From: Botryllus schlosseri | Lineage: Eukaryota | Length of the DNA: 64,000 bases | Assembly (NCBI GenBank): GCA_051294905.1 | Contig: CM119373.1 | Coordinates: forward strand, 34,658,001 to 34,722,000 | Direction: 5' to 3' | Shown: positions 1,283-32,195 of the stretch, in pieces | Layout: every line of letters starts with the position of its first letter | Position numbering within the stretch: the stretch's first letter is position 1 | The notes under the pieces: model-generated | Databases searched by the model: none | The model's input: only the letters and a program-made list of their open reading frames with translations | Told to the model about the DNA's origin: nothing | Translations under genes and position numbers: made by a program

Positions 1283-2338
1283 ATGGATAATGAAATGGAA
1301 CATAGAGAAATACAGCCAAATTTTAATCGGAAGACCGTTACTGGAAATGGAGGCGCAATCTTTGAATGCGACATTTGTGGAATGAAGTATCTATCCAAGA
1401 AGGGATTGCAGATGCATGTATCCAGACACTTAAGAAAGTTTGAATGTGACATTTGTGGGCATGCTTCATCATCCAAATATCATTTGAAATGTCACATGCT
1501 CATTCACAGCGACGTAAGAGAGTTTGAATGCGATTTCTGTGAAAAGGCGTTCACCCGAAAGTATGATCTGACCCAGCACATGGCTATACACAGCGACACC
1601 AAGGACTTCTTTTGCCTTGTTTGCGGTAAGATGTATTCTACTGAGAAACTTTTGCAGAGGCATGTGTCTGAACACCAACGAAACTTTTCCTGCGACGTTT
1701 GCGGACTTGCTTTTCAATCGAAAAAAACCTTGAAGCGCCACATGCTCATTCACACTAACGTGAAAGAGTTTAAATGTGATGTCTGTGAAAAGACCTTCGC
1801 CCAGAAGTTTACCCTGACTAGGCACATGAACATTCACACCGACACCAAAGGCTTCTTGTGTGATATTTGCGGTAAACTCTTTCCGTTGAAACATCACCTG
1901 CATCAGCACATGGATATCCACGCTGTTCTTAGAAGATATGGCTGTGAGCTATGTGATATGGCCTTCAGGAATAGGAGCAATCTGACCAGACACGTAAAGA
2001 TTCATGATGTGCCTGATACATTTGTATGTCCCATATGTGGACTAGGTTTTGCGAGGTACTCTGGATTGAGACACCACCTTCCAGTGCACATGAATGAAAA
2101 AATGTTTCATTGTGAAATATGCGGAAAGGCCTATTTCAGCGAAGATAAAGTTACAAGACACATGAAACTACATGTCAGCGACAATTTGGAATGTCCAGTA
2201 TGCGGATTAGGTTGCAGTAACTTGAAAAGTCACTTTATTTTGCATGTGAACGAAAGGAAATTTCAATGCGATGTATGCGGAAAGGCATTCTTGAGAAAAG
2301 GTGATGTTTTCGGCCATATGAAAATGCATTTCCAATAG
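1283..2338 (+). CDS. Tandem C2H2 zinc-finger protein, 351 aa, 12 finger units (one shortened); N-class a, C-class X
   Basis: Open ORF with C-x2-C-x12-H-x3-H repeats; ccATGG start context; in-frame TGA at 1277 upstream of the ATG. Confidence 0.93.
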   Translation: MDNEMEHREIQPNFNRKTVTGNGGAIFECDICGMKYLSKKGLQMHVSRHLRKFECDICGHASSSKYHLKCHMLIHSDVREFECDFCEKAFTRKYDLTQHMAIHSDTKDFFCLVCGKMYSTEKLLQRHVSEHQRNFSCDVCGLAFQSKKTLKRHMLIHTNVKEFKCDVCEKTFAQKFTLTRHMNIHTDTKGFLCDICGKLFPLKHHLHQHMDIHAVLRRYGCELCDMAFRNRSNLTRHVKIHDVPDTFVCPICGLGFARYSGLRHHLPVHMNEKMFHCEICGKAYFSEDKVTRHMKLHVSDNLECPVCGLGCSNLKSHFILHVNERKFQCDVCGKAFLRKGDVFGHMKMHFQ

Positions 2339-3317
2339 TCTTACTCGAGCTGCGTGTCCATTTCTATTTTCATTCATCAATAGTGAAATGCAAAGTAAGA
2401 TTGAAATATTCGAGTCATTTCCCGAAGCAAGGATGAAAAAATTTTGGATTGGAAAAACTTTTCAGATTTTTTAGCATGATACATGACACACTCAAATGAC
2501 GTCAGTGTGTCAAAATTGAAGGTTGCGCTTTTCTGTAAGTTTAGTGGAAACGGAATTCCGTCAACACTGCCATGAAGTTGAAGATACCAAAAGCAAATTT
2601 TGACTTTTCAACAGACTGAAGAACCTGATTATGCAGTCTCAATATTATTGCACTACTTACACTGTCGTCAAGTTGTAAATATCAAATTTGAAGTAAGCTG
2701 TCTATCTCTTTATTAAAGATAATGAGCTCTGCGTTTCCTACTCTTATTTGAGTATCAATGACTATGCTAACACCTCTTACAGCAATATACGAATTAGTTG
2801 TCTCATTGATTAACATGGTACAGTACCTATATACAATACTGCATGCACACGATTTTGTAGCATTGAATATATTATTGAATCACAGCAAGTGTTTAATGTG
2901 ATATCAGCCCGTTTGAGTACCAATGACTACTTTTACGACACCTAGCAATACGAGCTACTGAGTATCGTAACTATTTATTTAAAACGAGATTTACTACATC
3001 TCTACAACCAGTGGTAATGCTTGACCAGATTTACTGCATGCACAGTGCACATAGTTTTATCAATGTTGATGTTGTCGAATCACTTCAAGTGTTTTATGTG
3101 ATGTCTGCAGACCATAGCCGAGATAGTCCATTCGCTTTTGAAACCCTCCTTATTTTGAACACTTCGACTGTGGGTGGCCGAATGTGAATGTGAGACGTCT
3201 AATTCAATTTCATTTATGGATGTCATACAGAAAAATGTTTTGTTGCTAAATCCATAATCATGAGCCATCTGAACTCATTTATTTTTACTATGCTCTTGCA
3301 GATAAATAGGCCTAGAC

Positions 3318-3408
3318 CAGGGGTTCTCAACCTGGGGGTCGCGGGAGGCTCTCAGGGGGGGGCGCGAGAAATTGATGAAGTAAGTATAGGGGGGGGGGGG
3401 GGGTATAA
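3318..3408 (+). mobile_element. Solo left end of a Buster/Charlie-type hAT MITE
   Basis: Starts CAGGGGTTCTCAACCTGGGGGTCGCG after TAGAC; no right TIR seen; fused directly to ZNF coding sequence after a 15-G run. Confidence 0.6.
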
Positions 3409-3845
3409 ATTTGCGGCAAACTCTTCGCACTAAAACATAATCTGTTTCGACACATGAACATCCGCGCCGAGTTGAAAAGATATGTATGTGGTCTGTGTGG
3501 CATGGCCTTAACATCGATTGGCACTCTGTACAAGCATATAAAGATTCCTGCTGAGCCTAACAATTTAGCTGTCGCACCAAATAAGAATATTTTATGTCCT
3601 ATATGTGGACTAGGTTTTACGAGGAACTCCGGATTGAGACGGCATCTTCCAATTCATCTGAATAAAAAGAAGTTTCGATGCGAAATTTGCGGAAGGCATT
3701 TTTTGAGAAAGGCAGGCGTTCCACAACACATGAAAATCCATTTCAACAAGAATTTTGAATGTCCATTATGTGGGATAAGCCTGTCGAGTAGGAAAGCCTT
3801 GCGATATCACTGGCTCATCCACAGGAATCAGAAAAAATTTCAATG
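3409..3845 (+). pseudogene. Internal fragment of a C2H2 ZNF paralog (c-type upstream region, Y-type fingers), cut at both ends by MITE termini
   Basis: Reads CGKLFALKHNLFRHMNIRAELKRYVC...RYHWLIHRNQKKFQ; lacks start and last finger; acceptor AG retained at 3300-3301. Confidence 0.85.
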
Positions 3846-4323
3846 GGGTTGCATTTAAAACAAACGGTGTTTTAAACAAATACCCTTTTGAAAAAAAGAA
3901 TTTTGCCATAATTGTTTAAATACTTTCAGAAAATCGTGCAGTATATGAGCCTACAGACGATTTGCACCCAAAATAGTCGATGTATATGATGTAGGCTGGC
4001 TGGAACCTTGGAAATCGTCGTCGGCTCAACAGTTTGTGCGGGCACAGAATGGGTGTTCTGATGATCATGACCGCCGACCGTAAAAATGCTTCATAATGAA
4101 GTATTCCTGATTAAAGATATATTTGGTCTGTTTATGACAGTGATCGGAAGCCCTTTTCGCCGAAGATGCCATATTTACCCTACATTTTCAATTGTCAATA
4201 TTTTGACGTCACAACTAAATAGTCTTGATGTCATGGCTAAAAAAATCAAAAACATGTTTTAAACAAGGGCTTTGTTTTAATCACGTTTGATTTGAATTGA
4301 TTATTGTTTTAAATGCAACCCTA
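3844..4323 (+). mobile_element. Non-autonomous hAT (Ac-type) MITE, family with TIR YGGGGTTGCATTTAAAAC
   Basis: TIRs TGGGGTTGCATTTAAAACAA / TTGTTTTAAATGCAACCCTA; internally similar to 11368-11855; right flank paralogous to that copy, left flank replaced. Confidence 0.85.
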
Positions 4324-4500
4324 GCGTCTACTTGTTCAACTTTATTCATTGAAACCACACAAAACAAAGTTTTGGTTTTCGAATTAATTGTCATGAGCCA
4401 TTTTAACTCATTCAGTGTCTACCGTATTTTTGCAGATAACTAAATATAGGGTAAAACTGATTGAATCGTCAGACTTATTTGTACAATACCAATAAGTTCC

Positions 4501-5625
4501 ATGGATAACGAAATTGGAAATAAAGAAATACAACCAGATTTGAATCAACATACCACTACTGGAAATGGTGGCGTAAGCTTCGAATGCGATATTTGCGGCA
4601 TCAAGTATCAATCAAAAAAGGGATTCCAGATGCATGTATCCAGACACCTAAGAAAGTTTGCATGTGACTTTTGCGGGCGTGCTACATCTTCCAAATATCA
4701 GTTGAAACGTCACATGCGCGTTCACAGTGACGTAAAAGAGTTTGAATGTGATGTCTGTAGAAAGGCGTTCACCCAGAAGTATAATTTGACCCAGCACATG
4801 ACAATACACAACGCCACCAAGGACTTCTTTTGTCATGTTTGCGGTAAGATGTATTCTTCTGAGAAACGTTTGCGGAGGCATGTGTCTGAACACCAACGAA
4901 ACTTTTCCTGTGACTTTTGCGGTCTTGCTTTTCCATACAAAGGCATATTGCAACGCCACATGCTCATTCATGGTTCCACAAAACTGTTTAAATGCAATGT
5001 CTGTGAAAAGACCTTCACACAGAAGACTACGTTGACCACGCACTTGAACATTCACACCAATACCAGGGACTTTTTGTGTGATGTTTGCGGTAAACTCTTC
5101 GCATTAAAACATAATCTGTATCAGCACATGGCCATCCACTCCGGTCTGAAAAGATATGTCTGTGAGCTCTGTGATATGCCCTTCACGTTGAGGAGCAATC
5201 TGTACCAACATGTGAAGATTCATGGCGTGTCTAATACCTCCGCTGTCGCATCAAGTAAAAATATTGCATGTCCAATATGTGGACTAGGTTTTGCAAGGAG
5301 CTATGGATTGCGAAGGCATTTTCTGCATATGCACCTAAATGGATTGAAACAGCACCTCCCACTGCTCCTGAATGAAAATAAGTTTGAATGCGAAATATGC
5401 GGAAGGCGTTTTTTGAGACAGGATGGCGTTTCACTACACATGAAAATCCATTTCAACAAGAATTTTGAATGTCCAGTGTGTGGGATAAGCGTGTCAACTC
5501 GGGGAGCTTTGCGAAAACACTGGCTCATCCACGTGAATGAAAAGAATTTTCAATGTGAAATTTGTGGAATAGCATTCTTGAGAAAACGGAATGCCTCAGA
5601 TCACCTGAAAATACATTTCAAATAG
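4501..5625 (+). CDS. Tandem C2H2 zinc-finger protein, 374 aa, 12 fingers; N-class a, C-class Y
   Basis: Open ORF, ccATGG, acceptor AG at 4434-4435, in-frame TGA upstream at 4462. Confidence 0.93.
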   Translation: MDNEIGNKEIQPDLNQHTTTGNGGVSFECDICGIKYQSKKGFQMHVSRHLRKFACDFCGRATSSKYQLKRHMRVHSDVKEFECDVCRKAFTQKYNLTQHMTIHNATKDFFCHVCGKMYSSEKRLRRHVSEHQRNFSCDFCGLAFPYKGILQRHMLIHGSTKLFKCNVCEKTFTQKTTLTTHLNIHTNTRDFLCDVCGKLFALKHNLYQHMAIHSGLKRYVCELCDMPFTLRSNLYQHVKIHGVSNTSAVASSKNIACPICGLGFARSYGLRRHFLHMHLNGLKQHLPLLLNENKFECEICGRRFLRQDGVSLHMKIHFNKNFECPVCGISVSTRGALRKHWLIHVNEKNFQCEICGIAFLRKRNASDHLKIHFK

Positions 5626-6802
5626 TGCTAGTCAAGCTGCAGGTCGCTGTTCAGTCGCAATATAAACAGTAGGTTAGAAATTTCGTGTCCGGGCGAAGCA
5701 GGGCAGTGAACAAGTCGTGCCGTTCCATGTGAGAAGTCAATTATTTTGTCTCGCGTCATATTCCAGTTGCCACGAAGTCACGTCCTAGTCGGGTAGCAGA
5801 GGGTCGACTTTGAGTCGTAGGGTTGATATTCGAGTCTGAGTCCAAATCATTGTATTCAATGTTCACTTGTTCGGGGTTCATTCAAATCATATTTGAACGG
5901 TGATTTATCGTGATTCAGGACACATTAGTAAAAACTGGCAACGTCAGAGTATATACGTAGATCCTTAATCATGTGCCCATTTAGTATGTGAACAAGATAA
6001 CCCAAACACAATCCGACATGTATTCTCTTGTCAAAACATGCTACTTCCGTTTTATCGCTATAGTCCTTTTTACGCTATCTCCTGTTGCTTTTCATTCAAT
6101 GTGCAGGTCTCGTTTTCCAATACTTTTCAGATCTTGAATTTTTGCGACCACATTAAGTAGTTTTTGCATGTTACTTGACCTACTTCTACTTGTAACCGAT
6201 TTCTGGTGTATGTGTATGTGAATATCGTAATTTTTTATATAATATAACTTATGGTTTAACCTGGTATAATGCCTAACCAAGTTGACTGCATGCACACGAT
6301 TTTATATCATTGAGTTTACCATTATTGAATCACTTTGCGTACTTTGTGCGATATCGGTAGACTTTGACTGTTGACACCCTCTGGAGACTGAAGTTTGAGT
6401 TTGTCCGTAACATGTTTTGAAGGGGTCATAACCAACATGCAATTTAGCACTGCACGCAGGTATACCTAGTAAATGGATAGCAAACGTGTGGCCGTGGACA
6501 CGTAATTCAGTCTTTGAGAGCTGTAATTGATCTAGAAATTTTCTTCCTGCTGGTCGTGATTAGCTGCGACTTCATTTTTCAATTTTGATATAATAGCTTT
6601 CGTGACCAAATGAGAATGCGAGTCGACTTATTCAACCTGATACATAGAAATCGTTTAGAGAAATGATTATTTGTTGAATTTATAATCCCACGTTATTTGA
6701 ACTCATTCATTTTATACTGTATTCTCGCAGATAGATATAGTTTAAGGCTGATCGAATCGTCACAATTTTCGGTACAATATAATCAGTAGTCAACAAGGCA
6801 CC

Positions 6803-7615
6803 ATGGATCGTCAAAATCAAGTAATGGAACCATGTTTGAATCGCCAGGCCGTTACTGGAATTGGCAGTACAAGCTTAGAATGCTATTTCTGCAGCAAGAT
6901 GTATTCTTCTAAGAAAGTATTGAAGAAGCATTTGTCCGGACACCAACAAGACTTTAGCTGCGACTTTTGCGGGCTTACTTTTCAATACCAACACAGTTTA
7001 CAGCGCCACACGCTCGTTCACAGCAACGCAAGAGAGTTTAAATGTGATGTTTGTGAACAGACCTTCGCCCAGAAGTGTTCCCTATCCAGGCACATGAACA
7101 TTCACACAGACAACAAAGGCTACTTGTGTGATATTTGCGGTAAACTTTTTCTGTTAAAACATAATCTGCATCGACACATGGACATCCATGCTAGTTTTAA
7201 AAGATATGCCTGTGAGCTATGTGATATGGCCTTCAGGGATAGGAGCAATCTGACCAGACACATAAAGATTCATGGTGTGCCTAATACATTTTTATGTCCG
7301 ATATGTGGACTAGGTTTTACAAGAAACACTGGATTGAGAAAGCACGTTCCAGTGCACTTGAATGAAAAAAAGTTTCAATGTGAAATATGCGGAAAGGCCT
7401 TTTTGAGCAAAGAAAAAGTTACAGCACACATGAAAGTACATGTCAGCGAGAATCTGGAATGTCCTGTGTGCGGATTTGGTGTTTCGAGTCAAATTAACCT
7501 GAGGAGTCACTTTATCGTGCATGTGAATGAAAGGAAGTTTCAATGTGATGTATGCGGGAAGGCATTCTTGAGAAAGGCAGAGGTTTCCAGCCATATGAAA
7601 ATGCATTTCAAATAG
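6803..7615 (+). CDS. Tandem C2H2 zinc-finger protein, 270 aa, 9 fingers; N-class b, C-class X
   Basis: Open ORF, accATGG, acceptor AG at 6729-6730, in-frame TGA at 6749. Confidence 0.93.
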   Translation: MDRQNQVMEPCLNRQAVTGIGSTSLECYFCSKMYSSKKVLKKHLSGHQQDFSCDFCGLTFQYQHSLQRHTLVHSNAREFKCDVCEQTFAQKCSLSRHMNIHTDNKGYLCDICGKLFLLKHNLHRHMDIHASFKRYACELCDMAFRDRSNLTRHIKIHGVPNTFLCPICGLGFTRNTGLRKHVPVHLNEKKFQCEICGKAFLSKEKVTAHMKVHVSENLECPVCGFGVSSQINLRSHFIVHVNERKFQCDVCGKAFLRKAEVSSHMKMHFK

Positions 7616-8484
7616 TGCTACTCAAGCGGCGTGTCCATTTCTATTCTTATTTGTCAGTCAGGAAATGGAAAGTAGACTGAAATATTCGAGTCATGGGCGA
7701 ATCAAGGATGAAGAGGAAACATTGGAAAATTTCAATGGGGATCACTTGTTCATGTATTTAGGCATGATAAATGACACACTCAAATGACGTCAGCGTGTCG
7801 AAATCGAGGTTGCGCATTTCTGTAAATTTAATGAAAACGGAATTCATTCAACATCGCCCTGTAGTAGAAGATACCAAAAACAAATAGTGGCGTTTCAACA
7901 GACTGAAGAACGTGATCATGCAGTTTCAATAGTATTACACTACCTACACTGCCGTGAAGTTAGAAATACAAAGTTATAACTAAACTGCCGATCCATCTCT
8001 TTACTTAAGGTTGATTACGATTATGAACTCTGCTAGTTGGGCTACTACAAAAACAGTGCTATACTTTCATTTGAGTACCAATTTCTGTGCTTTCACATCT
8101 GATAGCAATATACGAATAAGATGTTACATGGATTAACCTGTTATAATACCTATTTAGGTTTACTGCATGCACATTGCACACGATTTTGTAACATTGAATA
8201 TATCATTGAATATCAACAAGTGTTTGATGTGATATCATCCTGTTTGAGTACCAGTGACTACTTTCACCACATTTAGCGATACGAGTTATTGAGTATCGCA
8301 AATATTCATTTAAAAAATATTTACTACATGCATCAACCAGTGATAATGCCCAACCAGATTTACCGCATGTACACGGTTTTGTCAATTTTGATTTTGTCGC
8401 ATCGATTCGAGTGTTTGATGTGATGTCTGCAGACCATATAGCCAAGATAGTCCATTCGCCTTTGAAACCCTCCATGTTTTAAAC

Positions 8485-8700
8485 CAGTGGTTCCCAATGT
8501 GGGCGATTTGGCGGTCTAGGGGGACGAAAATGACAAAGGGGGCGATAGGAGGGCAGAAATAGACCAAGGGGGCGAAAATAGCAAAGGGGCCGGTGATTAC
8601 AGTTTGTATGCACAGTTTTATTTACATTCAATTTTGGGGGCGATGATCCCTGTTGAGCTTGAAAAGGGGTCGATAGGTCGAAAAAGGTTTGGAACCACTG
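8485..8700. mobile_element. Buster/Charlie-type hAT MITE, 216 bp
   Basis: TIRs CAGTGGTTCC / GGAACCACTG; exact 8-bp TSD TTTTAAAC (8477-8484, 8701-8708); absent from the paralogous upstream region near 16140. Confidence 0.92.
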
Positions 8701-8915
8701 TTTTAAACAGTGCAGGTGTGGGTGGCCGAATGTGGATGTGAGACGTCCTAATGAACTTGATTTATGGAAGTCGTACTAAGAAATGTTTTATTGCAGAATT
8801 CATAATAATGATCAATGTAAACTCATTCCTTTTTTATTATGTTCTCACAGAATAATATAGACTGATCTAATTGTGACGATCATCCGTGCAATAGAATTTC
8901 TACCAACAAGGTACA

Positions 8916-9725
8916 ATGAATCATCATGTACAAAATGGTGAAATGGTACTATATTTGAATCATAAGACTGGTATTATGAATGGACTCGCAAGCTCAGAAT
9001 GTGATGTTAGCGGGAAGACATGCTCTTCTAGGAAAGGATCGCGGAAGCATGTTTCGGGAAGCCAAAGAAAATTTTCCTGCGACTTTTGCGGGCTTGCTTT
9101 TCAAACGAAACAACAGTTAAAACGTCACATGCTCATTCACACTAACGTGAAAGAGTTTGAATGTGAAGTCTGTGGAAAGACTTTCGCCCTGAAGGGTACC
9201 CTATCCACGCACATGAACATTCACACCGACACTGAAGGCTTCTTGTGTGATATTTGCGGTCAACTTTTCTCGTGGAAACATAGTTTGCATCGACACATGG
9301 ACAACCACGCTGGTCTTAAAAGATATGGCTGTGAGCTATGTGATATGGCCTTCATGTATAAGAGCACTCTGTACAGACACATGAAGGTTCATGGTGGGTC
9401 TAATACATTTGTATGCCCCATATGGGGACTAGGTTTTGCGAGGAACTCCGGATTGACACAGCATCTTCCAGTGCACTTGAATGAAAAAAAGTTTCAATGT
9501 GAAATATGCGGAAACGCCATTTTGAGAAAAGATAAAGTTACAAGACACATGAAAGTACATGTCAGCGACAATTTGCAATGTCCAATATGCGGATTAACTT
9601 GCAGTAACTTGAAAAGTCACTTTATCATGCATGTGAATGAAAGAAAATTTCAATGCGATGTATGCGGAAAGGCATTCTTGAGAAAAGGAGACGTGATCAG
9701 CCATATGGAAATGCATTTCAAATAG
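8916..9725 (+). CDS. Tandem C2H2 zinc-finger protein, 269 aa, 9 units (first degenerate, one C->W, one shortened); N-class c, C-class X
   Basis: Open ORF; acceptor AG at 8849-8850. Confidence 0.88.
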   Translation: MNHHVQNGEMVLYLNHKTGIMNGLASSECDVSGKTCSSRKGSRKHVSGSQRKFSCDFCGLAFQTKQQLKRHMLIHTNVKEFECEVCGKTFALKGTLSTHMNIHTDTEGFLCDICGQLFSWKHSLHRHMDNHAGLKRYGCELCDMAFMYKSTLYRHMKVHGGSNTFVCPIWGLGFARNSGLTQHLPVHLNEKKFQCEICGNAILRKDKVTRHMKVHVSDNLQCPICGLTCSNLKSHFIMHVNERKFQCDVCGKAFLRKGDVISHMEMHFK

Positions 9726-11367
9726 TGTTACTCGAGCTTCTTGTCCTTTTCTGTTTTCATTTGTCAGACGTGAAATGGAAGTAAGACTGAAATATTCGAG
9801 TCATTTGCCGAAACAAAAATGAAGAGGGAACATAGGAAAATTTGGATTGGGAAAACCTTTCAGATTTTTTAGCATGATACATGACACACACAAATATCGT
9901 CAGTGTGTCAAAATCGGAGGTTCTCATTTCTGTAAATTTAGTAGAAACAGTATTTGGTCAACACTGCCATAAAATTAAAGAACTTGATCATGCAGTCTCA
10001 ATATTATTGCACTACCTACACTTTTGTGAAGTTATAAATACTAAATTTTAAGTAAGCGGTCTATCTTTTTATTGAAGATAATGAACTCTGCGGTTCATAT
10101 ACTTTTGTTTGAGTAATAATGACTATGCTAACACCACCTAACACCTTACAGAAATATGCGAATTATTTATTTCATTGATTAACTTGGTACAGTATCTAAT
10201 CGGGTATACTGCATGCACACTATTTTGAGCATTGGATATAATATTGAATCACAACAAGTGTTTAATGTGATATCAGCCCATTTGGGTACCAATGACTACC
10301 TTCACCACATCTAACAATACGATGATATTTTTCATGTAAACGGCATATAACGGTTCCGCGTTGGAGTTTTCGCTTCTGTGAATAACTACTCGTCGGTTCG
10401 TTTTTCCATAAAACTCTAAACTCAGTGTGCACTTTTGCCTTCTCGAATTAGAGGGAGTAAATTAACAACGCCATATTTGAGTGGTTATAAAGGTGTCCAT
10501 GAACATTTTGCTGTCTTGTCGGAATATTTCAGGAAATATATTTCCTGCAAAAAATCTTAAAATTTGTTACGAATTTGCTGGATAAGATAAAAAACAATTT
10601 TTCAATCTACTGAGAATTGCTGCGCGGGCGGATGATATCGTCTGTTAGTCATATTCATGTCATCTTCTGTTACTTTCTATCAAGTGTGCATGCGTTTAAT
10701 TGATACAGGTCTTCATGTTCTGGTGTACTCTCTCTCAATTCTAATCCCACTCGTAGAGATTTCGACATATCTTTCGAACTCACTACTTATTAATAGAAAT
10801 TTAATGTGGTAATTGTACTTAAGCACCAATCAGTACTGTAAAAACCTCTGGCGTATGTACACGAGTAATTTACCATCGTGAAGCATCAATTTTTTTGCCC
10901 CTTTTTACCAGTGATAAAACCTAACCAGGTTTACTGCATGCACAGATTTTTTGATATTTAATCACTTCACATGCTTGATGCAATATTTGCAACTACAAGG
11001 AGTGCTAAAAAATCGTGACTCTCCATTAAGGAATGAATTTGCGAAACTCTGACTCCGACTCCACAGCCCTGGTTTCAACATACCTTGGAATTTGCTAGTT
11101 ATAAGTAGAAAAAAGTGGTACTTCTACTCGAGCACAAATGACTACTGTAACATCCTCTGAAGCATCAATTTTTCTAGATCTCGTTCCTTCTTTGAACCGG
11201 TGATAAAACCTTACCAGGTTGAATGCACACATAATTTTGTACTCTTTAATAACTTGCTTGACGTGCTTGATGTAATATCTGCAGACCAAAGTTGCAATGC
11301 TCCGTGACTATCCACCTTCTTTTAGAATTATATGACCATTTGTGCCCAAATGAGAATGTGCGACGAC

Positions 11368-11855
11368 CGGGGTTGCATTTAAAACAAACGGTGTTTTGAA
11401 CAAATTCCATTTTGAAAAAAAGAATTTTGCCATAACAGTTCAAATACTTTCGGAAAATCGTGCTGTATATGAGCCTACAGACGATTTGCACCCAAAATAG
11501 TCAACGCATATGATGTAAGGTGGCTGGAACCTTGGAAATCGTTGTCGGCTCAACAGTTTTTTAGGGGCACAGAATGGGTGTTCTGATGATCATGACCGCC
11601 GACCGTAAAAATGCATCATAACGAAGTATTCCTGATTAAAGATATTTTTGGTCTGTTTATGACAGTGATCGGAAGCCCTTTTCGCCGAAGAAGCCGTATT
11701 TACCCTACATTTTCAATTGTCACTGCCAGTTCATTGTGACGTTACAATTAAGTAGTCTTGATGTCAAGGCTGAAAAATCAAAAACATGTTTCAAACAAGG
11801 GCCTTGTTTTAAATATGTTTGTTTTAAGTTGATTTTCGTTTTAAATGCAACGGTA
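11368..11855 (+). mobile_element. Non-autonomous hAT MITE, same family as 3844-4323
   Basis: TIRs CGGGGTTGCATTTAAAAC / GTTTTAAATGCAACGGTA; 8-bp TSD GCGACGAC / GCGACAAC (7/8 identical). Confidence 0.88.
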
Positions 11856-12045
11856 GCGACAACTTGTTCAACTTTATTCGTTCAACTTTATTTATTGAAA
11901 CCACACAGAGAAAATTTTTGTTTTCGAATTAATTGTCATGAGCCATTTCAACTCATTCATTGTCTACCGTTCTACCGCAGATAACTAGATATATGTTAAA
12001 ACTGGATTAATCGTCATACTTATTTGTACAATACCAACAAGTTCC

Positions 12046-13275
12046 ATGGATAATGAAAATGAGAATAAAGAAATACAGCCAGATTTAAATCAACGGACCA
12101 TTACTGGAAGTGGTCGCGTAAGCTTCGAATGCTATATTTGCGGCATCAAGTATCAATCAAAGAAGGGATTCCAGAAGCACGTATCCAGGCACCTAAGAAA
12201 GTTTGCATGTGACTTTTGCGGGCGTGCTACATCTTCCAAATTTCAATTGAAACGTCACATGCTCGTTCACAGTGACATAAAAGAGTTTGAATGTGATGTC
12301 TGTAGAAAGGCGTTCACCCAGAAGTATAATTTGACCCGGCACATGACTATACACAGCGCCACCAAGGACTTCTTTTGTCATGTGTGCAGTAAGATGTATT
12401 CTACTGAGAAACGTTTGCAGAGGCATGTGTCTGAACACCAACAAAACTTTTCCTGTGACTTCTGCGGTCTTGCTTTTCCATACAAATGCACGTTACAACG
12501 CCACATGCTCATTCACGCCTCCATAAAAGAGTTTAAATGTGATGTCTGTGAAGAGTCCTTCACACAGAAGGCTACCTTGACCAGGCACTTGAACATTCAC
12601 ACCAATACCAGGGACTTTTTGTGTGATGTTTGCGGTAAACTCTTCTCGTTAAAACATAATCTGTATCAGCACATGGCCATCCACTCCGGTCTGAAAAAAT
12701 ATGCATGTGACCTATGCGATATGGCCTTCACATTGAGGAGCAATCTGTACAAACATATAAAGATTCATGGCGTGTCTAATACCTCAGCTGTCACATCGAG
12801 TAAGAATATCGCATGTCCTATATGTGGACTAGGTTTTGCAAGGAGCTATGGATTGCGAAGGCATTTTCTGCATATGCACCTATATCTGTACAAACATATA
12901 AAGATTCATGGCGTGTCTAATACCTCTGCTGTTTCATCGAGTAAGAATATTGCATGTCCAATATGTGGTCTCGGTTTTACGAGGAACTATGGATTGAGAA
13001 AGCACCTTCCACTGCACCTGATTGAAAAGAAGTTTCAATGCGAAATATGCGGAAGGCGTTTTTCGAGACAGGATAGTGTTCCACGACACATGAAAATCCA
13101 TTTCAACAATAATTTTGAATGTCCAGTATGTGGGATAAGCGTGTCGACTCGGGGAGCCTTGCGAAAACACTGGCTCATCCACGCGAATGAAAAGAATTTT
13201 CAATGTGAAATTTGTGGAATGGCATTCTTGAGGAAACGGAATGCCTCTGATCACATGAAAATACATTTCAAATAG
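12046..13275 (+). CDS. Tandem C2H2 zinc-finger protein, 409 aa, 13 fingers with an internal 141-bp duplication; N-class a, C-class Y
   Basis: Open ORF, ccATGG, acceptor AG at 11979-11980. Confidence 0.93.
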   Translation: MDNENENKEIQPDLNQRTITGSGRVSFECYICGIKYQSKKGFQKHVSRHLRKFACDFCGRATSSKFQLKRHMLVHSDIKEFECDVCRKAFTQKYNLTRHMTIHSATKDFFCHVCSKMYSTEKRLQRHVSEHQQNFSCDFCGLAFPYKCTLQRHMLIHASIKEFKCDVCEESFTQKATLTRHLNIHTNTRDFLCDVCGKLFSLKHNLYQHMAIHSGLKKYACDLCDMAFTLRSNLYKHIKIHGVSNTSAVTSSKNIACPICGLGFARSYGLRRHFLHMHLYLYKHIKIHGVSNTSAVSSSKNIACPICGLGFTRNYGLRKHLPLHLIEKKFQCEICGRRFSRQDSVPRHMKIHFNNNFECPVCGISVSTRGALRKHWLIHANEKNFQCEICGMAFLRKRNASDHMKIHFK

Positions 13276-14476
13276 TTCTGGTCAAGCTGCAGGTCGCTGT
13301 TCAGTCACAATATGAACAAGTGGGTTGGAAATTTCGAGTCAAGGCGAAGCAGGGTAGTGAACAAGTCGTGCGGTTCCATGCGAGAAGTCAATTAATTTGT
13401 TTCAATTATTTTGTCTCGCGTCATATTCCAGTTGCCACGGAGTCACGTCGTAGTCGGGTAGCAGAGCGTCGACTTCAAGTCGTAGGGTTAATATTCGAGT
13501 CTGAGTCCAAATCATTGCATTCAATGTTCACTTGTTCTGGGTTCATTCAAATCATATTTGAACGGTGATTTGTCATGAGTCGGGACACATTAGTGAAAAC
13601 TGTCATCGTCAGAGTGTATAACGTACATCCTTTATTATGTGCCCATCTTGTTTGTGAACGAGATAACCCAAACACAATCTGACATGTATTCTCTTACCAA
13701 CACATACCACTTCAGTTTCATCGCTATAGTCCTTTTTATGCTATCTCCTGTTGCCTTTCTTTCAGTGTGCAGGCCTCGTTTTCCAATACTTTTCAGATCT
13801 TGAATTTTTGCGACCACATTAAGTAGTCTTTGCATGTCTTGGTAATAGTTACTTGACCTACTTCTACTTGTAACTGAATACTGGTGTGTGTGTATGTGAG
13901 TGTCGTAATTTTTTATTTATGTAATTTATGCTGTAACCTGGTATAATGCCTGACCAAGGGACCAAGTTAACTGCATGCACACGGTTTTATATCATGAGTT
14001 ATTATAACCGTTATTGAATCACTTTGCGTATTTCATGCGATATCGGTAGACTTTGACACCCTGAGGAGTTTGAGTTTGTCTGTAACATGTTTTGAATGAG
14101 ACATTACCAGCATGCAATTTAGCACTGCACGCAGGTATACCTAGTAAATGGGTGGCAAACCTGTGGCCTTGGACACGTAATTCAATCTTTGAGAGCTGTA
14201 ATTGATCTAGAAATTTTCTTCACGCTGGGTGTGATTAAATGCGACATCATTTTTCAATTTTGATATAATAGCGTTCGTGACCAAATGAGAATGTGAGTCG
14301 ACTTATTCTATTATATACATAGAAATCGTTCAGAGAAATGATTATTTGTTGAATTTATAATGCCAGGTTATTCGAACTCATTCATTTTATACTGTATTCT
14401 CGCAGATAGATATAGTTTAAGGCTGATTGAATCGTCACAATATTCCGTACAATTTAATCTGTACCAACAAAGTACC

Positions 14477-15280
14477 ATGGATCGTCAAAATCAAGGAATG
14501 GAACCAAGTTTTAATTGCCAGTCAGTTACTGGAATTGGCAGTACAAGCTTAGAATGCTATTTCAGCAGCAAGATGTATTCTTCTAAGAAAGAATTGCAGA
14601 GGCATTTGTCCAGACACCAACAAGACTTTAGCTGCGACTTTTGCGGGCTTGCTTTTCAAACGAAACAACAATTAAAACGTCACATGCTCATTCACACTAA
14701 TGTGAAAGAGTTTAAATGTGATGTCTGTGGAAAGACCTTCTCCCTCAAGTGTAACCTATCTAAGCACATGAACATACACACCAACACCGAAGGATTCTTG
14801 TGTGATATTTGCGGCAAACTTTTTCCGTGGAAACATAGTCTGAATCGACACATGAACATTCACGCTGGTCTTAAAAGATATGCATGTGAGCTATGTGATA
14901 TGGCCTTCAGGTATAAGAGCAATCTGTACCGACACATGAAGGTTCATGGTGTGTCTAATACATTTGTATGTCCTATATGTGGACTAGGTTTTCCAAGGAA
15001 CTCCGGATTGACACAGCATCTTCCAGTGCACTTGAATGAAAAAAAGTTTCAATGTGAAATATGCGGAAAGGCCTTTTCGAGAAAAGATAAAGTTACAGCA
15101 CACATGAAAGTACATATCAGTGAGAATTTGGAATGTCCAGTATGCGGATTAACTTGCAGTAACTTGAAAAGTCACTTTATTTTGCATGTGAATGAAAGGA
15201 AATTTCAATGCGATGTATGCGGAAAGGCATTCTTGAGAAAAGGAGATGTGATCAGCCATATGGCAATGCATTTCAAATAG
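14477..15280 (+). CDS. Tandem C2H2 zinc-finger protein, 267 aa, 9 units (first C->S degenerate, one shortened); N-class b, C-class X
   Basis: Paralogous start accATGG at 14477 (MDRQNQ); acceptor AG at 14404-14405. Confidence 0.9.
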   Translation: MDRQNQGMEPSFNCQSVTGIGSTSLECYFSSKMYSSKKELQRHLSRHQQDFSCDFCGLAFQTKQQLKRHMLIHTNVKEFKCDVCGKTFSLKCNLSKHMNIHTNTEGFLCDICGKLFPWKHSLNRHMNIHAGLKRYACELCDMAFRYKSNLYRHMKVHGVSNTFVCPICGLGFPRNSGLTQHLPVHLNEKKFQCEICGKAFSRKDKVTAHMKVHISENLECPVCGLTCSNLKSHFILHVNERKFQCDVCGKAFLRKGDVISHMAMHFK

Positions 15281-16353
15281 CGCTACTCGAGCTGCGTGTC
15301 CATTTCTGTTCACATTTGTCAGTCGTGAAATGGAAAGTAAGACTGAAATATTCAAGTCATTTGCCGAAGCATTGATGAAGAGGGAACATTAGAAAGTTTG
15401 AATTGTGAAAACTTTTCAGACTGTTTAGCATGATACATAACACACACCAATGACGTCGGTGTGTCAAATCGAGGTTGCGCATTTCTGTCAATTTGATGAA
15501 AACGGAATCCATTCAACACCGCCATGTAGTAGAAGATACCAAAAACAAATAGTGGCGTTTCAACAGACTGAAGAACATGATCATGCAGTTTCAATAGTAT
15601 TACACTACCTACACTGCCGTGAAGTTACCAATACAAAGTTTTGACTAAGCTGTCAATCTATCTCTTTACTTAAGGTTGACTACGATAATGAACTCTGCTA
15701 GTTGGGCTACTACAAAAACAGTGTTTCATATACTTTCATTTGAGTACCAATTACTATACTTTCACCTCTTATAGCAATATGCGAATAAGTTGTTACATAG
15801 ATTAACCTGTTATAATACCTATTCAGGGTTACTGCAGGCACACGATTTTGTAACATTGAATATATCATTGAATATCAACAAGTGTTTGATGGGATATCAG
15901 CCCGTTTGAGTACCAATGACTACTTTCACCACATCTAGCAAGACGACCTATGAAGTAGCGCAACTATATATTTAAGAAATGATTTGCTACATCTCTACAA
16001 CCAGTGATAATGCTTAACCAGATTTACTGCATGCACACTATTTTATCAATGTTGATGTTGGCGAATCACTTCGAGTGTTTGATGTGATGTCTGCAGACCA
16101 TGGTCAAGATAGTCCATTCACCTTTGAAACCCTCCTTGTTTTGAACACTTCGACTGTGGGTGGCCGAATGTGGACGTGAGACGTCTTATTCAACTTGATT
16201 TATGTATGTCATACAAAGAAATGTTTCATTGCTGAATTCATGATCATGAGCAACGTGAACTCATTCCTTTTTTATTATGTTCTCACAGATTATTATAGAC
16301 TGATCTAATTGTGACGATCATCCGTATAATAGAATCTCTACCAACAACGTACA

Positions 16354-17194
16354 ATGAATCATCAAGTACAAAATGGTGAAATGGTACCATATTTGAATCA
16401 CCAGAATGTTACTATAAATGGACTCGCAAGCTCAGAATGTGATGTTAGCGGAAAGACATGTTCTTCTAAGAACGGATCACGGATGCTCGTGTCGGGAAGC
16501 CAAAGAAAACTTTCCTGTGACTTTTGCGGGCTTGCTTTTCAAACGAAACAACACTTGAAACGTCACATGCTCATTCACACTAACGTGAAAGAATTTAAAT
16601 GTGAAGTCTGTGGAAAAACTTTCGCCCGGAAGGGTAGCCTATCCGCGCACATGAACATTCACAGCGACACCAAGGACTTGTTGTGTGATATTTGCTGCAA
16701 ACTCTTTGCACTGAAACGTAGTCTGTTTCAACACATGGATATCCACGCCGGTTTAAAAAGGTATGCATGTGAGCTGTGTGAAATGGCGTTTACAGCATGG
16801 AATACTTTGTACCGACATAAAGATTCATGCTGTGTCTAATACTGTCGCTGCTGTACCAAGTAAGAATATTGTATGTCCCATATGTGGACTCGGTTTTGCG
16901 AGGAACTCCGGATTGAGACATCATCTTCCAGTGCACTTGAATGAAAAAAAGTTTCAATGTGAAATATGTGGGAAGGCGTTCTTGAGAAAGGATGACGCTG
17001 CACAACACAATAGAATACATTTCAACGATAAGATCGCATGTCCAATATGCGGATTAAGGATTTCGAGTCGCGGTACCTTCCAAAATCACATTCTCGTGCA
17101 TTATAATGAAAAGAAATTTCAATGTGAAATTTGTGGAATGGCATTCTTGAGAAAACGGAATGCCTCTGATCACATGAAAATACATTTCAAATAG
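16354..17194 (+). pseudogene. C2H2 ZNF paralog (N-class c, C-class Z) with a single 2-nt frameshift near 16818
   Basis: cgacataaagattcat versus paralogous cat-ata-aag-att-cat; two overlapping ORFs 16354-16839 and 16763-17194 join into one finger array. Confidence 0.85.
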
Positions 17195-23931: not shown

Positions 23932-24657
23932 ATGGATCATCAAAGTCAAGAAATGAAACCATGTTTAAATCGCCTGGCCGTTACTGAAATTGGCAGTACG
24001 AGCTTTGAATGCGACTTTTGCGGGCTTGCTTTTCAAAAGAAACATAACTTGAGACGGCACAAGATCATTCACACCAACGTGAAAGAGTTTAAATGTGATG
24101 TCTGTGAAAAGACCTTCGCCCGGAAGTGTGCCCTAACTAGGCACATAAACATTCACACCGACACCAAAGGCTTCTTGTGTGATATTTGCGGTAAACTCTT
24201 TCCGTTGAAACATAGTCTGCATCGGCACATGGACATCCACGCTGGTCTGAGAAGATATGCCTGTGAGCTATGCGATATGGCCTTCAGGTATAGGAGCAAT
24301 CTGTGCAGACACATAAAGATTCATGGTGTGTCTAATACATTTGTATGTCCCATATGTGGACTAGGTTTTCCGAGGAACTCCGGATTAAGACAGCACCTTC
24401 CAGTGCACTTGAATGAAAAAAAGTTTCATTGTGAAATATGCGGAAAGGCCTATTTCAGCGAAGGTACAGTTACAAGACACATGAAAGTACATGTCAGCGA
24501 CAATTTGGAATGTCCCGTATGCGGATTAGGTTGCAGTAACTTGAAAAGTCACTTCATTTTGCATGTTAATGAAAGGAAATTTCAATGCGATATATGCGGA
24601 AAGGCATTCTTGAGAAACGGGGATGTTTTCAGCCATATGGAAATGCATTTCAAATAG
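23932..24657 (+). CDS. Tandem C2H2 zinc-finger protein, 241 aa, 8 units; N-class b (first finger deleted), C-class X
   Basis: Open ORF, accATGG, acceptor AG at 23853-23854. Confidence 0.92.
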   Translation: MDHQSQEMKPCLNRLAVTEIGSTSFECDFCGLAFQKKHNLRRHKIIHTNVKEFKCDVCEKTFARKCALTRHINIHTDTKGFLCDICGKLFPLKHSLHRHMDIHAGLRRYACELCDMAFRYRSNLCRHIKIHGVSNTFVCPICGLGFPRNSGLRQHLPVHLNEKKFHCEICGKAYFSEGTVTRHMKVHVSDNLECPVCGLGCSNLKSHFILHVNERKFQCDICGKAFLRNGDVFSHMEMHFK

Positions 24658-25694: not shown

Positions 25695-26612
25695 ATGGAT
25701 CATCAAGTACAAAATGGCGAAATGGTATCATATTTGAATCAGCAGAATGTTACTATGAATGGACTCGCTAGCTCAGAATGTGATGTTAGCAGGAAGACAT
25801 GCCCTTCTAAGAAGGAATCGCCGAAGCGTATGTGGGGAAGGGAAGGAAAATTTTCCTGCGAATTTTGCGGGCTTGCATTTCAAAGGAAACAGGTATTAAA
25901 ACGACACTTACTCGTTCACACTAACATGAAAGAGTTTAAATGTGATGTCTGTGAAAAGACCTTCGCCTGGAAGTGTGCCCTATCCAGGCACATGCACATT
26001 CACACCGACACCAAGGACTTCTTGTGCGATATTTGCGGCAAACTCTTCGCACGGAAAGATAGTCTGTTTCAACACATGGATATCCACGCCGGTTTAAAAA
26101 GGTATGCATGTGAGCTGTGTGATATGGAGTTTACAGCAAGGAGCAGTTTCTACAAGCATATAAAGGTTCATGCCGTGTCTAATACTGTCGCTGCCGTACC
26201 AAGTAAGAATATTGTATGTCCCTTATGTGGACTTGGTTTTACAAGTAACTACGCATTGAGACGGCACCTTCCAGTGCACCTGAACGAGAAGAAGTTTCAA
26301 TGCGAAATATGCGGAAGGCGTTTTTTGAGACAGGATGGCGTTCCACTACACATGAAAATCCATTTCAACAAGAACTTTGAATGTTCAGTATGTGGGGCAA
26401 GAGTGTCGACTCGGAAAGCCTTGCGAAATCATTGTCTCATCCACGGGAATGAAAAGAAATTTTATTGTGAAATTTGTGGAAAGGCATTCTCGAGGAAAGG
26501 CAATGCCTCCGATCACATGAAAATACATTTGGGATCGTGCTGGCCAAGCTGCAGGTCCATGTCGAGTGTGCGGTCGGTCGCGGCCGCTGTTCAGTCACAA
26601 TATTGTCATTAG
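25695..26612 (+). CDS. Tandem C2H2 zinc-finger protein, 305 aa, 9 units (first degenerate), extended C-terminus; N-class c, C-class Y
   Basis: Open ORF, accATGG, acceptor AG at 25628-25629; ancestral catttcaaatag stop context replaced. Confidence 0.9.
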   Translation: MDHQVQNGEMVSYLNQQNVTMNGLASSECDVSRKTCPSKKESPKRMWGREGKFSCEFCGLAFQRKQVLKRHLLVHTNMKEFKCDVCEKTFAWKCALSRHMHIHTDTKDFLCDICGKLFARKDSLFQHMDIHAGLKRYACELCDMEFTARSSFYKHIKVHAVSNTVAAVPSKNIVCPLCGLGFTSNYALRRHLPVHLNEKKFQCEICGRRFLRQDGVPLHMKIHFNKNFECSVCGARVSTRKALRNHCLIHGNEKKFYCEICGKAFSRKGNASDHMKIHLGSCWPSCRSMSSVRSVAAAVQSQYCH

Positions 26613-27735: not shown

Positions 27736-28894
27736 ATGGATCATCATATTGAAAATGAAGGAATGGAAGTTCATTTGAATCACCCGTGCCTTAGTGGAAG
27801 CAGCTGTGTAAGCATAGAATGTGATGTTTGCGGCAAAATCGATCTCACTGAGGAAGGATTGCAGAGTCATGTATGTGGACACAAAAAAAACTTTGCCTGC
27901 GACATTTGCGGACTTGCTTTTCAAAATAAATTTCGCTTGAAACGTCACATGCTGATTCACAGTAACGTTAAAAAGTTTGAATGTGAAGTATGTGGAAAAG
28001 GCATTAGGCTAGTTTAACCCAGCACATGAACGTTCACACCAAGGACTTCGATGCCAGATACTTTTGTGATGTTTGCGGCAACATGTTTGCTCCCAAGATA
28101 GGGTTGCGACAGCATGGCGCCAGACAGCAAAGAAATTATGCATGTGACTTTTGTGGTATTGCTTTTTCGTACAAATCTGACTTGAGACGTCACGTGCTCA
28201 TTCACGGCTCCGCAAAAGAGTTTGAATGCGATGTCTGTGAAAAGACCTTGACACAGAAGAGTACGTTCTCATTCACCTTGACACAAAAGATTTTGAATGC
28301 AATTTTTGGGGAAAGGCCCTCTCCCAGAAGCATACTTCGACCAGGCACATGGTCATTCACAACGTCACCCAGGACGTCTTATGCGATATTTGCGGCAAGC
28401 TATTCGTGCAGAAACATAGGTTGTTTCAACACATGGATATCACTCCCGGTTTGAAAAGATATGTATGTGAGCTGCGTGACATGGCCTTTACGTTGAGGAG
28501 CAATCTGAACCAGCATATAAAGATTCGTGGTGTGTCCAATACTTCCTCTGTCGCATCGAATAATTATGTTGTGTATCCCATATGTGGACTAGGTTTCACG
28601 AGGAACTCCGGATTGACACAACACCTTCCAATACACCTGAATAAAAAGGAATTCCAGTGTGAAATATGTGGGAAGGCGTTCTTTAGAAAGGGCGGCGTTG
28701 CACAACACAATAGAATACATTTCAACGATAAGATCACATGTCCAATATGCGGATTAAGGATTTCGAGTCGCTGTGCCTTGCGAAATCACCTTGTCGTGCA
28801 TAATAATGAAAATAAATTTCAATGGGAAATTGGTGGAATGGCATTCTTAAGAAAACGGAATGCCTCTGATCACATGAAAATACATTTCAAATAG
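27736..28894 (+). pseudogene. e-class ZNF pseudogene with Z-type C-terminus and multiple frameshifts
   Basis: ORF pieces 27736-28017, 28026-28454 and 28349-28894; deletion near 28005 relative to the 32196 paralog. Confidence 0.9.
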
Positions 28895-31913: not shown

Positions 31914-32195
31914 ATGGACATGGACGGGACAGTTTGACATGGTTATCTGGTTTCCAATTAGCTCATTACGACTATATCCTGGAATGCTGCCGGGAATAAA
32001 AAAATGTTTGGCCCTCTGACCTAGTACGATAGCCTTTATCCAAATGGGAATACACAATGAGTTTTCAACTTGAATTGTGGAGCATTGTTTGTTGCTAAAT
32101 TGAAAATCATGAACCATTTGCAGTCACTCATTTTCTGTTATATTCTTGCAGGTCAAGTTGAGTTAGGACAAAGCAATCTCTACGAACTAGGTACC

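Follow-up and report, generated by a model that had tools for sequence, protein, structure and literature searches.

The window, a stretch of 64,000 nucleotides analysed as a whole, carries a tandem C2H2 zinc-finger cluster of roughly 60 kb, with about 14 intronless C2H2 zinc-finger units, genes and pseudogenes taken together, all on the same strand, at positions 1–38000. A regular expression detected 123 fingers on the + strand of this interval. These are tandem C-x2-C-x12-H-x3-H fingers with short linkers, the organization of poly-C2H2 proteins (Pfam PF00096/PF13465), and five cluster members match PF00096 with E-values of 1e-28 to 1e-61. The arrays are short (7–13 fingers), the N-terminal tail is only 25–30 aa, and the genes appear to be single-exon. 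Labels G1 to G7 and G9 to G11 stand for the genes starting at the positions below, and paired letters give the N-terminal class (a to e) and C-terminal class (X to Z) of each.

1283..2338, + strand: G1, a-X; putative lineage of the 3' parent of G4, itself a chimera, a-like to ~1640–1750 and then G9-like
1844..9230, + strand: duplicated unit, copy 1 (~7.4 kb), with the 3' part of G1, flank, G2, G3, flank and the 5' part of G4
4501..5625, + strand: G2, a-Y; positional duplicate of G5 (86–96% identity over the whole length, dS 0.186)
6803..7615, + strand: G3, b-X; positional duplicate of G6, with a full-length penultimate finger retained
8469..8716, no strand assigned: MITE-like high-copy element with 29-nt inverted ends, upstream of G4
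8699..9228, + strand: c-type part of G4 (N-terminus and first fingers, with the 217 nt before them), ~90% identical to 16137–16668 (G7) and 88% to G10
8916..9725, + strand: G4, intact 269-aa C2H2 ORF; chimera of a c-class 5' part and an X-class 3' part (from the ORF, Pfam and the mosaic identity profile)
9228..9234, + strand: putative site of the G4 crossover; it keeps the frame and lies in the linker that follows the finger 9162–9224
9231..16668, + strand: duplicated unit, copy 2, with the 3' part of G4, flank, G5, G6, flank and the 5' part of G7
9234..10322, + strand: X-type segment of G4 (3' fingers and ~600 nt of X-class 3' flank); its nearest flank is that of G1
12046..13275, + strand: G5, a-Y; 141-bp intragenic tandem duplication (12744–12884 and 12885–13025)
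14477..15280, + strand: G6, b-X
14597..15310, + strand: gene-conversion tract of G6, G4-like between G3-like sequence, with a c-type finger at 14633–14695; ends approximate
16354..17194, + strand: G7, c-Z; putative lineage of the 5' parent of G4; pseudogene, switching to Z-type (G11-like) at ~16875–16954
23932..24657, + strand: G9, b-X; first b-class finger missing
25695..26537, + strand: G10, c-Y; c-to-Y switch at ~26262, stop codon lost and ORF continuing to 26612
27736..28894, + strand: G11, e-Z pseudogene; e-to-Z switch at ~28621–28661

By finger position, pN/pS was 0.11 at the structural F, 0.18 at the structural L, 0.81 at the contact positions (–1, +2, +3, and +6), and 0.57 at the others; the C and H positions are invariant by construction, as the fingers were chosen on them. 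Because F and L are constrained and variability is focused on the contact residues, we conclude that these genes coded for protein during their divergence. Several copies have since decayed: G7 has a 2-bp deletion near 16814, G11 has a stop after 93 codons, and the gene at 32190 has lost its ATG. Together, whole-finger gain and loss within genes and pseudogenization give a birth-and-death picture. Pfam searches of five members and of seven intergenic ORFs between 7616 and 12045 returned only zinc-finger families (for G4, zf-C2H2 and zf-H2C2_2): among these sequences we found no KRAB domain, which a distant upstream exon could still encode, no ZAD (PF07776), BTB (PF00651), or SCAN domain at E ≤ 0.01, and no FiNZ-type N-terminal domain. 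Rfam gave no match inside the cluster. Word-indexed and exhaustive HMMER searches (1.84 billion representatives) returned generic poly-ZNF proteins at ≤39% identity and no close homologues. As these searches yielded no orthologous cluster, the trees described below are unrooted and do not polarize the events.

The initial annotation had proposed that N-classes travel with their own upstream DNA and C-classes with their own 3' flank, and had listed ten combinations of the two, all of which DNA trees recovered. The 5' partition (G4 coordinates 8700–9060), which takes in 216 nt upstream of the ATG, gives the clades a {1283, 4501, 12046} (support 100/100), b {6803, 14477, 23932} (99/98), c {8916, 16354, 25695} (100/100), and e {27736, 32190} (100/100), with the d gene 36468 by itself. 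The 3' tree (9231–9725) instead groups X {1283, 6803, 8916, 14477, 23932} (100/100), Y {4501, 12046, 25695} (100/99), and Z {16354, 27736} (99/98). Two of these C-classes reappear in the tree of the 3' flank (9726–10020; X clade 100/99, Y clade 98/100), and the Z flanks of 16354 and 27736 are related by sliding identity (73–88% over ~150 nt). Congruence of the two halves had been named as evidence against shuffling; the trees are incongruent, and AU tests rejected each 5' clade on 3' data and vice versa (p 4e-3 to 1e-100). A GARD-like scan gained 1006 AICc units when two trees were allowed, and it put the best breakpoint at 9230 in G4 coordinates. The max-chi-square breakpoints of five chimeras and of the conversion tract in 14477 were each matched by 0 of 1000 permutations. 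The breakpoints do not fall in linkers throughout: the G4 breakpoint does, the others are at finger starts or within fingers, and we accordingly claim no hotspot.

Could selection on the fingers have produced these patterns by convergent or parallel change, without recombination? Contact residues do evolve fast, but synonymous sites and the noncoding DNA of the upstream regions and 3' flanks carry the class signal with equal strength, which already refutes this account; we give it practically no weight.

The chimera at 8916 is the clearest case. An ungapped comparison, independent of the multiple alignment, bears out the proposal of a 16354-like start joined to a 14477-like body: identity to 16354 is ~90% over 8700–9180 and ~72% over 9280–9700, while identity to 14477 reaches 90–97% over 9280–9700. 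Sites that are G7-like or G6-like are split 120:38 to the left of the junction and 33:205 to its right (max chi-square 154; 0 of 1000 permutations match). One detail of the initial annotation did not hold. The FQTKQQLKRH finger had been counted with the 14477-like body, but 8916 is 94% DNA-identical there to both 16354 and 14477. The true switch lies one finger further on, at 9228–9234; the FQTKQQLKRH finger of 8916 is not derived from 14477, which seems itself to have acquired it. Of note, one zinc ligand of G4 is gone (CPIC to CPIW), its private changes number 17 nonsynonymous versus 7 synonymous, and the gene looks to be under relaxed constraint.

Tandem paralogs 80–95% alike are a classic source of mis-assembly, and a collapse or mis-join could in principle have created such junctions; the material we inspected consists of short contigs. 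The initial annotation had itself raised an assembly artefact as a ground for refutation. A bridging contig of run X1, which comes from a different sample and study than the probable source run, rules against it. This 218-nt contig spans 9129–9346 with 2 mismatches (99% identity), overlaps a contig covering 8949–9158, and compares with only ~76–90% identity for G6 and G7 across the same span. In addition, the cluster is present as a single copy in the assembly, and the divergence pattern is gradual and consistent across kilobases. We therefore regard mis-assembly as highly improbable. With respect to polymorphism among individuals, short contigs of few runs show the junction in run X1 and the stretch 9591–9999 in run X7.

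The surroundings of G4 point to how it may have formed. Gene order is G1, G2–G3, G4, G5–G6, G7 (X0-M-chimera-M-C), with a copy of the DNA between the two putative parents on either side of the chimera and the parents themselves outermost. Segmental homology pairs 1618–2953 with 9005–10322 and 3845–8484 with 11369–16146 (86–90%), and the homology of 3845–9230 with 11369–16668 takes in the c-type upstream DNA and the 5' end of the coding sequence and stops at the G4 breakpoint. On the other side, homology of the G4 X flank to all other X flanks ends abruptly at 10322. Synonymous divergence is similar among the duplicates (dS 0.186 for G2/G5, 0.229 for G3/G6, and 0.175 for the 5' part of G4/G7), consistent with a single age of the duplicated parts. 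In the noncoding X-flank tree, the flank of G4 groups with that of G1, its putative upstream parent ((G1,G4) 100/99; (G3,G6) 100/99); the K2P distance between G1 and G4 flanks is 0.158 compared with 0.21–0.27 to other flanks, although it is somewhat above that of other duplicated noncoding DNA (0.10–0.13). Because array order, unit ends, similar dS, and the flank tree agree, we infer, as the initial annotation had suggested in general terms, unequal crossover, here between the 16354 and 1283 lineages, as the origin of 8916. A c-type gene (G7/16354 lineage) would have recombined in register with an X-type gene ~7.4 kb upstream (G1/1283 lineage), duplicating the intervening a-Y and b-X genes and leaving at the junction G4/8916, in which the c promoter, N-terminus, and first fingers would be joined at 9228–9234 to X 3' fingers and flank. 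Taken alone, this event is the reading we moderately favor. The MITE-like element at 8469..8716 is absent from the matching site upstream of G7 and was inserted after the duplication.

Homology does not extend along the full length of the unit. The intervals 2954–3844 and 10323–11368 do not match: the former, on the G1 side, contains what is left of the X flank together with c-upstream DNA and the remnant of a c-Y gene, and the latter, on the side of G4, contains a high-copy repeat plus a long stretch of a-upstream DNA resembling that before G1. Extra, later rearrangements must therefore be assumed. The left homology edge (3845, 11369) falls at one end of a MITE-like element (11372–11851), a position that hints at a possible repeat-associated rearrangement at 3845/11369.

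Gene conversion, also claimed in the initial annotation, appears as a second layer, since the coding finger tree contradicts the flanks. The coding 3' tree unites G4 and G6 (98/97); on coding data an AU test rejected (G1,G4) (p 0.0017), and on flank data it was (G4,G6) that was rejected (p 1.6e-8), these flank-versus-coding groups having been named post hoc, after the trees were seen. Within 14477, an internal G4-like tract (~14597–15310) is bounded by sequence like that of its positional homologue 6803, with a breakpoint at 14631–14651, and the c-type finger of this tract is missing from G3. The claimed match between the back half of 1283 and 23932 was also recovered, G1 turning G9-like after ~1640–1750. 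We propose that later gene conversion homogenized the coding finger arrays while the flanks stayed put: a G4-to-G6 tract of ~700 bp would have given 14477, a b-class gene, its c-type finger, and G1 and G9 may have been homogenized likewise in the 3' part of their coding sequence. The coding dS between G4 and G6 (0.182) is no lower than the duplication dS; conversion must thus be of almost the same age as the duplication, unless the details of the history were different. The a-X (1283), c-Y (25695), c-Z (16354), and e-Z (27736) genes were probably made by the same kinds of event.

The G6 tract demonstrates that conversion is at work in the cluster, and G4 might have arisen by conversion alone, from a positional c gene (the G7 duplicate) whose 3' part was overwritten by a G6-like X donor. 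The coding 3' part of G4 is indeed closest to G6 (93%, clade 98/97). However, the X-type stretch of G4 continues ~600 nt beyond the stop into X-specific flank, to which the Y and Z flanks are not homologous (branch lengths ~0.8), so that the tract would have to end in nonhomologous DNA; moreover, the G4 flank pairs with G1 and not G6 (AU p 1.6e-8), and homology of the duplicated unit stops exactly at the junction. We consider conversion alone unlikely. Alternatively, c-X could be the ancestral c gene, with G7 and G10 as the recombinants. Both are themselves mosaic (c-to-Z and c-to-Y), and the unrooted trees leave room for such a direction. Yet G7 and G10 share ~500 nt more of c-specific middle fingers (88–92% mutual identity), and this middle stretch resembles the e-class G13 (82–88%) and is unlike all X genes; among the c genes G4 alone lacks it, and the switch in G4 also coincides with the duplication boundary. 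This makes the ancestral c-X gene a very improbable reading. Unequal crossover followed by conversion thus remains our preferred account of G4. The data show directly that the genes are mosaic, where they break, that their trees conflict and that a second data set contains the junction; the order and direction of events are the part that we infer. We put at about 80% the probability of this account as a whole, in which a lineage-specific, finger-only, intronless C2H2 family evolves by nonallelic homologous recombination between misaligned paralogs.

Anti-Lepore-type fusions (haemoglobin delta/beta; red/green opsin arrays) stem from tandem paralogs that cross over unequally but in register; the product is a duplication whose junction gene takes its 5' part and promoter from the downstream parent and its 3' part from the upstream parent. 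The layout from G1 to G7 matches this exactly, but the G4 event is old (dS about 0.18) and apparently common to the samples, later conversion overlies it, and the module is a finger block. Mammalian KRAB zinc-finger clusters (e.g. human chr19, mouse) are tandem same-strand poly-C2H2 arrays that grow via gene conversion and unequal crossing-over; their finger arrays undergo "drifting and shifting", fingers are gained and lost, pseudogenes are numerous, and contact residues are the most variable positions (PMC5363842, PMC2604467, PMC2443715). These features of array, recombination, pseudogenes, and contact variability recur in the tunicate-type cluster, which differs in having no detected KRAB, SCAN, or BTB domain, apparently single-exon genes, 7–13 fingers, and no close public homologues. 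At the PRDM9 zinc-finger minisatellite, recombination in finger-coding repeats likewise reshuffles recognition modules (PMC3890296, PMC2794550), but PRDM9 shuffles near-identical fingers within one gene and between alleles, whereas the tunicate-type cluster shuffles mainly whole paralogs 70–90% alike, with promoters and flanks carried along. Finally, TE-driven evolution has been proposed for insect ZAD-ZNF and fish FiNZ genes (PMC10547256); the present cluster is similarly a clade-restricted, clustered, fast-turnover poly-ZNF subfamily amid repeats, unlike them without a detected ZAD or FiNZ-type N-terminal domain.

The new pairings may confer new DNA-binding specificities, and the set of recognition residues does differ in each paralog; the lost zinc ligand and relaxed look of 8916, and the pseudogene state of 16354 and 27736, nevertheless speak for caution here. 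Bulk RNA-seq run X20, ~6% of which was read (too little for a firm statement), gave ~0 reads on gene bodies and reads on repeats only. More speculatively, the vertebrate KZFP and insect ZAD systems might have their tunicate equivalent in this cluster: a ZNF family that is young, consists of fingers only and is pressed to diversify, with the abundant MITEs and retroelements as one conceivable target. Re-pairing of promoters and finger blocks would then be a selected source of new binding proteins and expression patterns and not a neutral by-product; we hold this to be a distinctly outside prospect.

The mechanism is not new and is the usual mode for such clusters, well known from mammalian KRAB-ZNF genes. 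What this one locus does is separate two processes that are usually lumped in ZNF cluster evolution, as comparison of flank trees with coding trees distinguishes crossover, which would make the promoter/array chimera, from conversion, which would later spread finger blocks. A second gain is the record of a poly-ZNF family, clade-restricted and effector-less, from a tunicate-type genome, and the value of the locus lies in annotation and in a possible entry to the question of whether tunicate families track transposable elements.

About 14 units of one family of intronless C2H2 zinc-finger genes, all on the + strand and spaced 2–4 kb apart, occupy positions 1–38000 of the window. Five of these units (G7, with a 2-bp deletion, and G8, G11, G12, and G13) are pseudogenes. 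The units are listed below, numbered along the window, with the breakpoints at which four of them change from an N-class (a–e, the 5′ part and upstream DNA) to a C-class (X–Z, the 3′ fingers and flank).

Zinc-finger units of the cluster
G1, starts 1283, +; breakpoint a to X at about 1640–1753
Unnamed fragment, 3454–3858, +; gene remnant
G2, starts 4501, +
G3, starts 6803, +
G4, starts 8916, +
G5, starts 12046, +
G6, starts 14477, +
G7, starts 16354, +; 2-bp deletion; breakpoint c to Z at about 16875–16954
G8, about 18622, +; broken
G9, starts 23932, +
G10, starts 25695, +; breakpoint c to Y at about 26262
G11, starts 27736, +; broken; breakpoint e to Z at about 28621–28661
G12, 29000, +; fragment
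G13, starts 32190, +; start lost, frameshift
G14, starts 36468, +

Upstream of the window, the cluster extends ~22 kb further on the same contig (C3:34636600–34658000, window-relative −21400 to −2300) and includes five additional units with a further N-class (MEHQIQNGDLESYANCQ...) and X-like C-termini whose penultimate finger is full-length; two are intact 280-aa ORFs. The family is found at this one place only in the 495 Mb assembly. Because a word-indexed search and an exhaustive HMMER search (1.84 billion representatives) returned nothing above 39% identity, we regard the subfamily as lineage-restricted. Pfam detected zinc-finger families only in the cluster proteins and no domain in intergenic ORFs; KRAB, ZAD, BTB, and SCAN were tested for and found in neither set, placing the cluster outside those subfamilies.

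Several rearrangements of other kinds are visible in and around the units. The a- and d-class genes carry an old internal 246-nt (three-finger) duplication, ~66% identical (1377–1922, 4595–5140, 12140–12685, and 36565–37110), while b and c genes have a single copy of this block and G9 lacks one further finger. G5 gained a finger through a 141-bp intragenic tandem duplication (12744–13025; copies 82% alike), of whose second copy G2 retains only a fused remnant, an aberrant HFLHMH finger. In G10 the stop codon usual for the family is gone, and the reading frame runs on for ~25 extra codons (26529–26612). The d-class G14 and its broken copy G8 lie in a 3.4-kb segmental duplication (82%; 18229–21620 versus 36072–39577). 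Between G12 and G13, a 625-nt stretch (31292–31916) matches its own reverse complement at 87% and is thus a large palindrome; a separate inverted pair (30538–30859 with 31591–31913, 82%) lies in the same interval. Downstream of the cluster are a full-length U5 spliceosomal snRNA gene (44177–44291, +; Rfam RF00020, 83.6 bits) and a 368-aa ORF (46911–48017, +) with a weak CD20/MS4A-like match (PF04103, E 1.5e–4, under the cut-off), which is probably an unrelated membrane-protein exon.

To compare the two ends of the genes, we put 12 units, each extended by 300 nt at both ends, into one alignment and built trees for each part, delimited in G4 coordinates (window positions along G4). The 5′ part (8700–9060, including 216 nt upstream of the ATG) grouped the genes into a (G1, G2, G5), b (G3, G6, G9), c (G4, G7, G10), and e (G11, G13), with G14 standing alone, whereas the 3′ coding part (9231–9725) grouped them into X (G1, G3, G4, G6, G9), Y (G2, G5, G10), and Z (G7, G11). 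Support was 99 to 100% in both trees, and the X and Y groupings recurred in the 3′ flank. These are the classes of the initial annotation, and all ten of its ten N-class/C-class combinations are real. The trees are incongruent: AU tests rejected each 5′ clade when applied to the 3′ part and each 3′ clade when applied to the 5′ part (p 4e–3 to 1e–100), a fair comparison because the classes had been named before the trees existed. In a GARD-like scan, two trees outperformed one by 1006 AICc units; the best break fell at 9230 in G4 coordinates, and a second shoulder appeared around 9470–9510.

G4 itself matches G7 and G10 at 86 to 94% identity from 8700 to ~9180 (60–75% to G6 up to ~9040) and then, from 9280 to ~9900, matches G6, G9, and G1 at 90 to 97% (~72% to G7). 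Of the sites that distinguish G6 from G7, those in G4 split 120:38 (G7-like:G6-like) to the left of 9228–9234 and 33:205 to the right (chi-square 154, reached by 0 of 1000 permutations, as were the values for the breakpoints in G1, G7, G10, and G11). These comparisons were ungapped (offset 7438 to G7 and 5555 to G6), so the mosaic is independent of the multiple alignment. The switch is in frame, within the linker after finger 9162–9224, and bears out the earlier description of a 16354-like (G7) start followed by a 14477-like (G6) body; the finger FQTKQQLKRH, however, does not belong to that body, as its DNA is equally close to G7, and G6 is the acquirer. Nor is the junction an assembly artefact: X2 is the probable source run, and a 218-nt contig from run X1, which belongs to another study and another sample, bridges the junction (9129–9346, two mismatches) and overlaps a second contig (8949–9158), the paralogs being much too divergent over that span for 99% matches; run X7 from a third study covers 9591–9999 with one mismatch.

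Self-comparison revealed big segmental homologies with ends inside genes. The segment 3845–8484 matches 11369–16146 at 86 to 90%, and this match continues through the c upstream DNA and 5′ coding sequence to halt at the G4 junction (9230/16668); 1618–2953 is homologous to 9005–10322. The homologies thus give the array order G1 / G2 G3 / G4 / G5 G6 / G7, which is a textbook product of in-register unequal crossover, X0-M-[C 5′/X0 3′]-M-C. A downstream gene C (G7 lineage) would have crossed over with an upstream gene X0 (G1 lineage), producing the duplicated units 1844–9230 and 9231–16668; we take G4 to be formally an anti-Lepore-type junction gene. The duplicates have similar dS (G2/G5 0.186, G3/G6 0.229, and the 5′ part of G4/G7 0.175). 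Within its X-type part G4 carries ~600 nt of flank specific to X genes; nothing corresponding follows the Y or Z genes, and a conversion tract would hardly extend across such a stretch. The noncoding flank tree joins G4 with G1 and G3 with G6 (each 100/99), with a K2P distance of 0.158 for G1–G4 versus 0.21–0.27 to others. These three observations fit unequal crossover, and this proposal of the initial annotation is supported by the array order, the unit ends at the G4 junction, the similar dS, and the flank tree.

The coding sequence of the 3′ fingers conflicts with the flanks, joining G4 with G6 (98/97) and G1 with G9 (83/86) and leaving G3 outside; AU tests rejected (G1,G4) for the coding part (p 0.0017) and (G4,G6) for the flank (p 1.6e–8). 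G6 is G3-like to ~14590 and from ~15440 on but G4/G9-like in between, and this foreign tract, starting at 14631–14651, brings a c-type finger absent from its positional twin G3. G6 also shares with G1, G4, and G9, but not with G3, the loss of 9 bp from its penultimate finger. Most simply, ~700 bp of G4 would have been copied into G6 by conversion, in a tract running across the G4 junction. Gene conversion, also proposed earlier, thus draws support from the coding/flank conflict and the internal tract of G6. One value fits less well: in the coding part G4 and G6 differ by a dS of 0.182, no lower than that of the duplication, so the conversion would have to be almost as old. Smaller foreign patches occur in G7 (16834–16950) and G13 (32670–32790).

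A further feature does not fit the crossover model: the duplicated units share no homology over 2954–3844 versus 10323–11368. On the G1 side the sequence runs on in the manner of other X flanks, reaching c-upstream DNA and then the remnant of a c-Y gene. The G4 side holds a repeat of high copy number together with a long stretch of a-upstream type, similar to the DNA before G1. The left edge of the homology coincides with the end of a MITE-like element. Rearrangements after the duplication must be assumed. Two MITE-like elements are present (8469–8716 and 11372–11851; terminal inverted repeats of 29 and 17 nt), and their contig depth in X2 exceeds that of single-copy DNA by factors from the hundreds up to a thousand. 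The former has ~85% matches on many chromosomes. The corresponding position in front of G7 lacks it, so its insertion postdates the duplication; positions 8474 and 8699 are joined in one X2 contig, which may represent an empty-site allele or a cross-match.

Across aligned fingers, pN/pS was 0.11 at the structural F and 0.18 at L, highest (0.81) at contact positions −1, +2, +3, and +6, and 0.57 elsewhere, which is the usual signature of diversifying DNA-binding ZNF families. Every paralog has a distinct set of recognition residues, and those of G4 are c-type in two fingers and X-type in the remainder. Such chimeric pairings may confer new specificities, and G4 might be a working new factor, but the first finger is degenerate in all c-class genes, and in G4 a different finger has also lost one of its zinc ligands (CPIC to CPIW). 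The private codon changes of G4 are 17 nonsynonymous and 7 synonymous. A small portion of one RNA run gave no signal.

We conclude that cassette mosaicism in this cluster is confirmed and that recombination between paralogs is supported as its cause. Mammalian KRAB-ZNF tandem clusters evolve by unequal crossing-over and gene conversion, gaining and losing fingers and "shifting" their arrays (PMC5363842, PMC2604467, PMC2443715), the same mode of evolution as at the Botryllus locus, and metazoans generally show lineage-specific ZNF expansions (PMC10547256). The mechanism is thus known and ordinary; what is new is a lineage-restricted zinc-finger family that evolves in this way.
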